Assembly: GCA_002269645.1 (NCBI GenBank)
Contig: NIVC01001069.1
Coordinates: 62,001-126,000 of the forward strand
Direction: 5' to 3'
DNA length: 64,000 nucleotides
From: Macrostomum lignano
Taxonomy: Eukaryota
The translations under genes and the position numbers were made by a program. The notes under the pieces were generated by a model. That model had not been told where the DNA came from, did no database searches, and saw only the letters and a list, made by a program, of their open reading frames with translations. Of the stretch, positions 9,501 to 12,500 are shown in pieces. Each line of letters begins with the position of its first letter. The stretch's first letter is position 1.

Positions 9501-12500
9501 TGGGTGAGGAGTGAGGCGGGTGAGGAGTGAGGTGGGTGAGGTGTGAGGTGCGTGAGGAGTGAGGCGGGTGAGGAGTGAGGCGGGTGAGGAGTTAGGCGGG
9601 TGAGGAGTGAGGCGGGTGAGGAGTGAGGCGGGTGAGGAGTGAGGCGGGTTTAGAGCATGATTTGAGTAACATTTAAATAAGGTGTGTACTTAAGTGATAC
9701 GAAAATAATGAGATAAATTTCCACAGGGTTTTTATATTTTCTGCTCATTTGTAAAATCATAGAAGTTTCATAAGAATTTACATGTGTTGAAAGTTTCTGC
9801 CACTGCGAACGCAAATCACCAAAGCGAAGAATAACGGCCCCACTCAGCTAGAACTTCTAATAGCGGTGTGCTTACTAACTCTAATTTATTCTACTTACAA
9901 GCAAGAACCACTAGAGGTCACCGTTGTATCAGGACGCAACACTCGCGTTGTATGGAAATGTTTTTGAAGTCCGATGACACTGCATCAAGTGGGGTTTTAC
10001 CGCACAATCTCAACGTGAAGAATCCGTCTAGGAAAATGCTTTGAAGAGAAGAGTAGTTTTGCTACAATTTTGGTGCGTTTGCCAAACTCCAGTGGCATTT
10101 TACCTGAATTTAACTCGATTAACTAATGATGTGCTATTTAGCCAGAAAGATTGACGATTGACATTAAAAAAGCAAAATTAGTTTTTCGCCAATGTTACGT
10201 CCTGATAAAACAGTAACCTGTTACTGTTACAGTTACTGTCATTCCAGTAAAAATGAAATACTGTATTTGTAGCAGAATTTGCCTGTACGGTTGCAAGTTC
10301 AAGTCAATTTCAAGGTGTAATTGAAGCGGAGCTGCAAAGGAGAAAAGCAAAGCAAGAGTACGAGAAGACAGAGAGAGAGAGAGCCAACGAAACACGGTGC
10401 AGAAAAACGAATCAAACTTTCAGGTCACAGCCTATGGAGTGATTCTGCACAAGGGAGCATTCTGTCGGCAGGCATTTAACCTGCTTGACATGCTGGTTGT
10501 GTTCACCAGTATTATCTCATTTTGTCTCGAGTACGTCCGGCACAAAATCCCTTGCCTTGCCAATGCCCGTCTGTATATTCCTTTTACGTTTTAATAGTAA
10601 ACCCACAGATAGTTGATGCCTTGTACGAACCCTGCTGTGTTATACTTTAGTTATCACTCAGATGGTGTCATCAATCAAAATAACTGATTGTTATCACCAT
10701 ATACACTGATAAAACGAACGACAATAATGCCTTGAAACCTATCTTAAACGTTAGTTTAGTTTAGCCGAAGAAACTTAGAACTATTAAACATTCGTGTGAT
10801 AACGGACATGGAGAGTTAAACCAGAAGGAAGCTGCACTCGGTTTTCTTAGAAACGAGCTGGATGCCGGTAAGAAACGGATATTTGTCGTATTTCCAGTGC
10901 GTTCAGTAAACTCTCGAGAACGCATATAGCGCTGAATGGGGTTTCGCCATAGACGCATTCGGTCAAGAAAAGTTCGGTTTCTTGAGAGCATACTAAATGC
11001 ACTGGCGATATGCTACAAATATGCATTATTTACCGGCTTCCAATCCATTTCTAAGAAAATCCTGGTGCTTGGATATATCACCCCGCGTAGTTTCTTAGTA
11101 CAGAAAAATCTGATCTGAAGTCATATTAACCAAAACTATGCTACATGTACATATGCTATGTTAATAGCTACCGTGAATGTAGTGTCTGCACGTGTATTAC
11201 TAACCAACTTAATTGTTAAACGCCTTGCAACATTAACACTCCCTGCAACATTAGCAACATTTCGTTTAACACTCCCGCGGTCGTTATAAATGATTTATTC
11301 AAACGGTTCTGTTTGCTAATGACAGCTTTTTATTGTTGTACATTTTTACATGCAGATTTTGTTGAGACAAATTTATTTTAACCAATGCAAACAATTACCG
11401 CTTAACATTAAGTTCACAATTTGGTGTTTGAAACGAGCAAGATTTCAGTGAGTTTGATTTAACAAATCACCAGGTGATCTCATACGGCGTGGTGCTTCAC
11501 AAAGGCTCATTCTGCCGGTCGACATTCAATTTGTTAGATTTGTTGGTTGTGTTCGTTGCCTTGGTGTCATTCTTTATCGAGTGAGTGTTTCTCGAGGACA
11601 TCATTGAACTGTCTGCGATGACAGTGGCAACTGCAATTCAAGCACAACTCGCTGTTTTTCTCTTTCCGATGTTTTTGGCTGCCCAATGCTCTTGATCTGG
11701 TCGCTTTGTCCACTGCCGAAATTTAATCGAATTGTGATTGAATTTATTTCGAATTTCTAAATCTACCAGTGTGAACTGGTCGGGACTGTTAGGAACAGGA
11801 TGCAAATATGGAAATGGACAGGAAGTTGCCTGAGTTGAATGGACTGGATTCAAAATACTTGAAATAGTATATGCATTTCTAGTTTTGACACAAGTTTCTT
11901 ACTTTCCTTTCATCTAACCGTCAGCCGGGACTTTGGCTGAGCTCACTCACTGCTGCCTAGACTGTCCTGTAATCTTTGTTTCATTCCTAATTTTGCTCAA
12001 TGCCAAGCACAGAAAAAACTAAAAGTTACTCTTCCCATTGCAACTGTGGGAGAAATCTGGGGATAAAGGTATAGCTATTGAATATTTCAGAGTGTCGAGC
12101 AACTTTCGCAGGTAAAATATGTATCTAAACAATTTCGCTTTCATAACTAAGTAAACGTACTGGAAAGGGGTTTTCATTAGTTTTTATACTACCTCTTGGC
12201 CACTATTTTCAGCTAAGTTTGTCAGGCTTGTAAAGTGACACGTTATTTGTGTTTTTCCAATAATTCCAAGTTCATCGTTTTTATTCTACAATTAAATTAA
12301 CTGTTTTCAACTATTCTATGCCAACTATTTTGCGAACATTTCAGAAATGACACTTTCTCTGTCGTTAAAATTCTCCGTGTACTTCGAGTGCTCAGACCAC
12401 TGCGAGCCATTAATCGGGCGAAAGGCTTGAAGGTGAGAGAGCCTTGCGATCTTCATTTTCTGTCCATTGTAATAGCCCTGCAGTGACCTTGCTCTGATTA

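Follow-up and report, generated by a model that had tools for sequence, protein, structure and literature searches.

Voltage-gated channels diversify their sensors and pores without gene duplication mainly by tandem exon substitution, and a published survey of human and fly calcium channels counted ten independent events of this kind, each at a different exon. In the vertebrate Cav1 genes the literature describes three mutually exclusive pairs, 8/8a, 21/22 and 31/32, the same three that a preliminary description of the DNA studied here had named. Exons 21/22 of CACNA1C and CACNA1D code for the S2 segment of repeat III (IIIS2) and part of the S1-S2 linker, and exons 31/32 of Cav1.2 code for the S3 segment of repeat IV (IVS3). 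For Drosophila Ca-alpha1D two tandem-exon events are reported, and its exons 15/16 are reported to be mutually exclusive. Mutually exclusive exons in the IIIS3-IIIS4 region of an insect sodium channel are reported in one further source (PMC3805903). Here we describe two tandem copies of the IIIS3 exon in a Cav1 gene of the flatworm Macrostomum lignano, in a stretch of 64,000 nucleotides (nt) of contig NIVC01001069.1 (assembly GCA_002269645.1, positions 62,001 to 126,000, forward strand), hereafter the window. We read the two copies, exons A and B, as functional mutually exclusive tandem exons of the channel's alpha-1 gene, and give this reading a probability of about 0.8.

Comparison with described exon pairs

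The vertebrate 21/22 pair is found in the same Cav1 family and the same repeat III sensor, follows the same logic of small tandem exons, and involves the exon directly adjacent to the one duplicated here. Yet it is a different exon, and its homologue in the window is single-copy. Since the vertebrate exons measure 60 nt, an mRNA that includes both remains in frame, and the resulting protein is non-conducting; the 107-nt pair of the window, by contrast, is frame-exclusive. The two events arose independently. The 31/32 pair is also a mutually exclusive pair for the S3 helix of a Cav1 voltage sensor, but in repeat IV instead of repeat III; when the coding part of the gene was searched all against all, no duplicated IVS3 exon was found in the window.

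The insect sodium-channel (para) exons occupy the same structural position in a related four-repeat channel. They belong, however, to a sodium channel (Nav) and not to a Cav1, come from another phylum, and include S4, which in the window falls in the next, constant exon. Arthropod Ca-alpha1D, like the gene studied here, is an invertebrate Cav1 with a duplicated exon in repeat III, but its tandem exons code for IIIS5, in the pore module, and arthropods have a single IIIS3 segment. A second IIIS5 exon was not found in the window, where the sole IIIS5 match lies at 13256-13372. Three arthropod gene models, from Limulus (P0303), Timema (P0336) and Operophtera (P0314), contain two IIIS5 exons back to back, one of the HVVQC type (...LFK) followed by YVVKCVIVAIKTIGN...LFK (YVVKC type). 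These are probably the known mutually exclusive Ca-alpha1D pair, read through by gene predictors.

The full text of open-access papers yielded no mutually exclusive IIIS3 exon in any Cav1 and no such event in flatworm channels, and the IIIS3 pair has apparently not been described before. It would add a new site of exon substitution in a phylum whose channel isoforms are almost unstudied. Taken with vertebrate IIIS2 and arthropod IIIS5, it would mean that repeat III of Cav1 was diversified three times, at three neighbouring exons.

The IIIS3 exon pair and its predicted use

Exons A and B are both intact, have the same length and phases, and are flanked by AG and GT (Table 1), in agreement with the preliminary description. 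Because 107 nt is not a multiple of three, taking both copies or neither shifts the frame and leads to a stop. Splicing in silico gave this result: the frame remained open when the IIIS2 exon was joined to either A or B and then to the IIIS4 exon, and immediate stop codons appeared when A and B were joined or when both were skipped, so that the earlier claim of a frame broken by double inclusion is borne out. When the 64 kb window was searched with exon peptides (tblastn), there were exactly two copies of the IIIS3 exon and one copy of each neighbouring exon. The only other tandem exon pair returned by the all-against-all search concerns IVS6.

Table 1. Exons and introns around the IIIS3 pair, in window coordinates; a slash marks the limit between exon (capitals) and intron.
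Feature	Position	Strand	Description
IIIS1 exon (3' part)	8087-8414	+	constitutive; end of II-III loop and IIIS1, ends ...NSQNYRNK; located by tblastn with cestode Cav1 P0252
IIIS2 exon	8812-8871	+	constitutive, 60 nt; homologue of vertebrate CACNA1C exons 21/22; single-copy
Intron before exon A	8872-10423	+	1552 nt; tandem repeats and one inverted-repeat pair
Exon A	10424-10530	+	107 nt, phase 0 to 2; ttcag/GTCACA...TCTCGA/gtacgt; end of IIIS2, S2-S3 linker, IIIS3
Intron A-B	10531-11473	+	943 nt; 53-nt imperfect inverted repeat, 10842-10894 and 11007-11059
Exon B	11474-11580	+	107 nt, phase 0 to 2; accag/GTGATC...TATCGA/gtgagt; alternative copy of exon A
Intron after exon B	11581-12344	+	764 nt
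IIIS4 exon	12345-12432	+	constitutive; S3-S4 linker and IIIS4; takes phase 2 from A or B

The two exons have 69 of their 107 bases in common (38 differ) and 23 of their 36 residues (13 differ). Their differing codons comprise 14 synonymous and 13 non-synonymous cases. By the Nei-Gojobori method the proportion of synonymous differences (pS) is 0.74, which is saturated, against a proportion of non-synonymous differences (pN) of 0.24; the heavy synonymous divergence noted earlier is thus real. We simulated neutral divergence by putting 38 random substitutions into exon A or into exon B, with 20,000 trials each. For neither exon did a single trial keep at least 22 of 35 identical residues without a stop, the mean being 13 of 35. 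The 200-nt intron flanks of A and B are no more similar to each other than shuffled controls (0.54/0.57 vs 0.55/0.56). Since the flanking introns retain no residual similarity, the duplication is old. A recent duplication or an assembly artefact is ruled out by the unrelated flanks together with the saturated synonymous sites. The comparison of the two exons indicates that purifying selection has long acted on the protein sequence of both copies.

This constraint bears on two other accounts of the pair. One copy could be a silent relic that looks intact although splicing has ceased to include it in mRNA, or never did so. Synonymous sites are saturated, yet 23 of 36 residues, all channel-critical residues, the exact length and both splice sites have been kept, and none of the 20,000 neutral trials per exon preserved the conservation observed. 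The lack of transcript evidence for either copy, the weaker donor of exon A and the sufficiency of one copy in most relatives speak for a relic, which we nevertheless regard as improbable. Alternatively, the second copy could serve mainly as a "poison" exon, whose regulated co-inclusion would give a frameshifted, degraded mRNA and lower the expression of the channel. Inclusion of A and B does produce an immediate stop, and in rodent heart the co-inclusion of exons 21 and 22 is described as yielding a Cav1.2 variant that does not conduct and exerts a regulatory effect. A poison exon, however, needs no conserved protein sequence, yet the code for the S3 helix is strongly constrained in both copies. 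We consider this account very unlikely, more so than a relic.

Mutually exclusive use is the reading that we favour, and the actual alternative use of the two exons is deduced from the frame logic and from selection on both copies. In each mRNA the IIIS2 and IIIS4 exons would be linked by either A or B; transcripts with both copies or with neither would be non-productive and presumably cleared by nonsense-mediated decay. Splicing factors specific to cell types would presumably decide between the copies through the two weak acceptors, with the donor of exon A also on the weak side. The pyrimidine tracts are poor at both acceptors, and the donor of exon A (gtacgt) is weaker than that of exon B (gtgagt), which fits the consensus. 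Poor acceptor tracts and a weaker donor are typical of regulated exons.

Two simple ways of enforcing exclusivity were rejected. Steric hindrance is ruled out by the length of the intron between A and B, 943 nt being too long, and incompatible U2 and U12 spliceosomes are ruled out because all four splice sites are GT-AG. The three introns around A and B contain no TGCATG (Rbfox-type) motif. The inverted repeat in the middle of intron A-B is 77% complementary; it may represent a structured element of the intron or a small transposon with inverted repeats.

Several results weigh against mutually exclusive use. The protein collections searched contained no transcript, expressed sequence tag or protein of the source species with either junction, and a splice-junction DNA pattern had no match in metagenome contigs. 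No conserved competing RNA structure emerged from a scan of the introns of this one locus, which is a weak test: it returned six inverted-repeat pairs, weak or intron-internal, the best of them within a single intron. Finally, a functional difference between the isoforms is a prediction, and all 13 substitutions between A and B are conservative.

Of these substitutions, nine affect IIIS3 and four the segment that precedes it, made up of the end of IIIS2 and the S2-S3 linker. Five of the last seven residues of IIIS3 differ (FTSIISFC in A, FVALVSFF in B). A and B do not differ in the conserved S3 aspartate, in the HKG-FCR motif of the linker or in the FNLLD-LVVF core. The outer end of IIIS3, to which those five residues belong, packs against the top of S4. 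Judging by the vertebrate S2/S3 exon pairs and the insect sodium-channel IIIS3-S4 exons, the exchange of A for B likely tunes the voltage dependence or the kinetics of voltage sensor III at the outer S3/S4 interface, and not permeation. Cockroach variants of these sodium-channel exons differ in gating. The pair is a natural, minimal swap of 13 residues with which to probe how the outer part of S3 tunes voltage sensor III.

Host gene and position of the duplicated exon

Judging from its sequence, the host gene is one for a Cav1 (L-type) calcium-channel alpha-1 subunit, as had been proposed. A stretch of 85 residues from S2 to S4 (IIIS2 exon, exon A and IIIS4 exon) aligns without gaps to residues 831-915 of rabbit Cav1.1, and equally without gaps to Cav1.3 and Cav1.2. 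It scores 148-165 bits against Cav1.1, Cav1.3 and Cav1.2, compared with 100-114 bits against Cav2 and Cav3 and at most 83 bits against Nav. Named protein matches to the window exons are L-type channels. The best matches are 60-82% identical, and none exceeds 82% in the collections searched. The word-indexed protein searches list subjects no longer than about 1.75 times the query, which places full-length channels outside their range; an exhaustive HMMER search with the IIIS5-pore exon was made in addition.

By tblastn, the Cav1 of the cestode Anoplocephala perfoliata (P0252) lies in order along the + strand of the window: its matches start with IS2 at about position 196, continue past IVS6 and end with the pre-IQ/IQ region at about 26.9 kb. 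In domain II the two channels are 70% identical, and IIIS5 of the window gene has a motif of the flatworm/leech type. The window contains most of the gene, with the N-terminus outside it. By homology, the exon pair sits within an otherwise normal channel gene, complete from IS2 to the IQ region. Just upstream of the pair, the intron between the IIIS1 and IIIS2 exons (8415-8811, +) apparently begins with a GC donor (AAG/gcgagt). We read it so because the boundary ...YRNK/ILNKFD is fixed by homology (it is seen in the spider) and there is no in-phase GT.

The preliminary description placed the duplicated exon directly after the equivalent of vertebrate exons 21/22, and the homology supports this placement: the 60-nt exon upstream matches 21/22 and is single-copy. 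Several vertebrate gene-model fragments begin exactly at MTAYG, which shows that the exon boundary at this point is common to vertebrates. We take the duplicated exon to be the counterpart of human exon 23, presumably also of 107 nt. From the Cav1.1 alignment and the UniProt topology, we take it to code for the final two residues of IIIS2, for the whole of IIIS3 and for the intracellular S2-S3 linker between them.

Distribution in relatives and origin of the pair

We scanned genomic loci of relatives with the exon peptides, each locus separately. The IIIS3 exon is single-copy in the spider Caerostris (L002), where the locus has no gaps, and in the leech Helobdella (L009), where the region is gap-free and introns of about 300 nt lie on either side. 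It is also single-copy in two insects, the mosquito Anopheles (L010), in which S1, S2 and S3 are fused in one exon, and the blowfly Lucilia (L008), in which S2 and S3 are fused and the next intron has gaps. The tick Rhipicephalus (L001) shows one copy within the covered part of the locus. Among parasitic flatworms, the exon is single-copy in the cestode Anoplocephala (L006), whose locus has no gaps and whose 4-kb intron returned nothing in a motif scan, and in the trematode Opisthorchis (L007), whose intron to the S4 exon is just 253 nt. One copy was found in the trematode Paragonimus (L003), but the very intron that would house a second one is interrupted by a 3-kb stretch of N. The Schistosoma margrebowiei contig extends just 267 nt upstream of its IIIS3 exon. 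A broad presence of the pair in invertebrate Cav1 genes, which would have made it familiar, is contradicted by the single copies in the spider, the mosquito, the leech, one cestode locus and one trematode locus.

One gene model departs from this pattern. P0108 (UniParc UPI00060B2FD2), a flatworm-like model that resembles cestode channels in IIIS1, contains two tandem homologues of the IIIS3 exon of exactly 36 residues each. Their order by type matches that of the window, the TSIIS type first and the B-like type second. Between them lies a short bridge of the kind that gene predictors introduce to hold the frame, and the model breaks off at a point where reading would run through a gtaa donor. 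A tandem pair at this exon is therefore present in at least one flatworm besides Macrostomum lignano. The independent invention proposed at the outset stands with respect to the vertebrate 21/22 event, but the event is not unique to the window.

Parasitic flatworms have two paralogues, here X and Y, which can be distinguished by the IIIS3 exon and the S4 motif. Paralogue X, with which the first copy of P0108 is counted, has TSIIS in the IIIS3 exon and RVSRVLR in S4. Paralogue Y, known from the Schistosoma margrebowiei fragment, shares VALVSF with exon B and has RVLRVLR in S4. These types raise the possibility that the pair is no local invention but an ancient A/B pair of flatworms, later split between two Cav1 paralogues of the parasites, one of A type and one of B type. 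The pair would then be flatworm-wide and older than the duplication into Cav1A and Cav1B; the parasites would show reciprocal retention, and Macrostomum (the window) and UPI00060B2FD2 would have kept both copies. This concerns the origin of the pair and not its mechanism.

The A-specific TSIIS occurs in paralogue X of Paragonimus, Opisthorchis, Heterobilharzia and Anoplocephala. Paralogue Y of Schistosoma margrebowiei has the B-specific VALVSF and equals exon B at 9 of the 13 positions that are diagnostic between A and B. The succession of an A-like and a B-like copy in P0108, and reports of Cav1A and Cav1B in flatworms, agree with an ancient pair. On the other side, neighbour-joining of the 36-residue exon peptides left the grouping unresolved, with bootstrap values of 27% for A+B, 22% for A+X and 6% for B+Y. 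Exon B is simply close to the general Cav1 consensus, and paralogue X of Opisthorchis and Anoplocephala shows no trace of a second copy. Moreover, the second P0108 copy has, like the first, the Asn at position 18 that is specific to the X lineage, and clusters with the X clade, which fits a separate duplication. We hold the ancient origin, and with it the reciprocal retention in parasites, to be possible but doubtful.

If it were true, the flatworm genes would be an invertebrate counterpart of what is reported for CACNA1F/CACNA1S in vertebrates. Subfunctionalisation of the voltage sensor at the level of isoforms would be linked to that at the level of genes, making a test case for the passage from splice isoforms to separate genes. 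Flatworm Cav channels also matter to pharmacology, and their annotation would gain from the true set of isoforms; the gene models P0108 and P0252 are visibly broken around this exon. In the annotated P0252, of 2168 residues, the II-III loop is followed directly by IIIS4. IIIS1-S3 are missing from the model, although their three exons are intact in the Anoplocephala locus (L006, 21650-23904); the annotation is in error at precisely this place.

Other features of the window

A second candidate mutually exclusive pair lies further downstream in the channel gene, at 22008-22216 and about 22318-22451 (+), and would cover the outer pore loop together with the first half of IVS6. The frame is kept when one copy (209 nt, or 134/143 nt) is spliced alone between donor 21207 and acceptor 23316. 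Both copies together would shift it, since the lengths are all 2 mod 3. To our knowledge, no IVS6 mutually exclusive pair has been described in vertebrate Cav1.

Downstream of the channel gene is a cluster of retrotransposons of the type lacking long terminal repeats (non-LTR), with endonuclease, reverse transcriptase and RNase H, at 54200-58065 (-), 61497-64000 (-) and 47-50 kb. The element at 54-58 kb (-) aligns over its full length to a Macrostomum lignano reverse transcriptase (UniRef A0A1I8HJM6), with 50-74% identity, and this protein is the sole close match that carries a species name. On sequence alone, this element, the IIIS5 motif and the domain II identity point with moderate confidence to a macrostomid or some other free-living flatworm.

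Long tandem arrays of a CCTCACTCCTCACCC-like unit occupy parts of the introns before and after the IIIS2 exon, at 8436-8740 (+) and 9112-9690 (-) respectively. They yield long spurious open frames, which for the array after the IIIS2 exon lie only on the opposite strand. Further minisatellite-like arrays, visible as repetitive open frames, are present in introns and downstream of the gene, at 1660-2300 (+), 40200-40790 (+), 42900-43570 (+) and 59480-60750.

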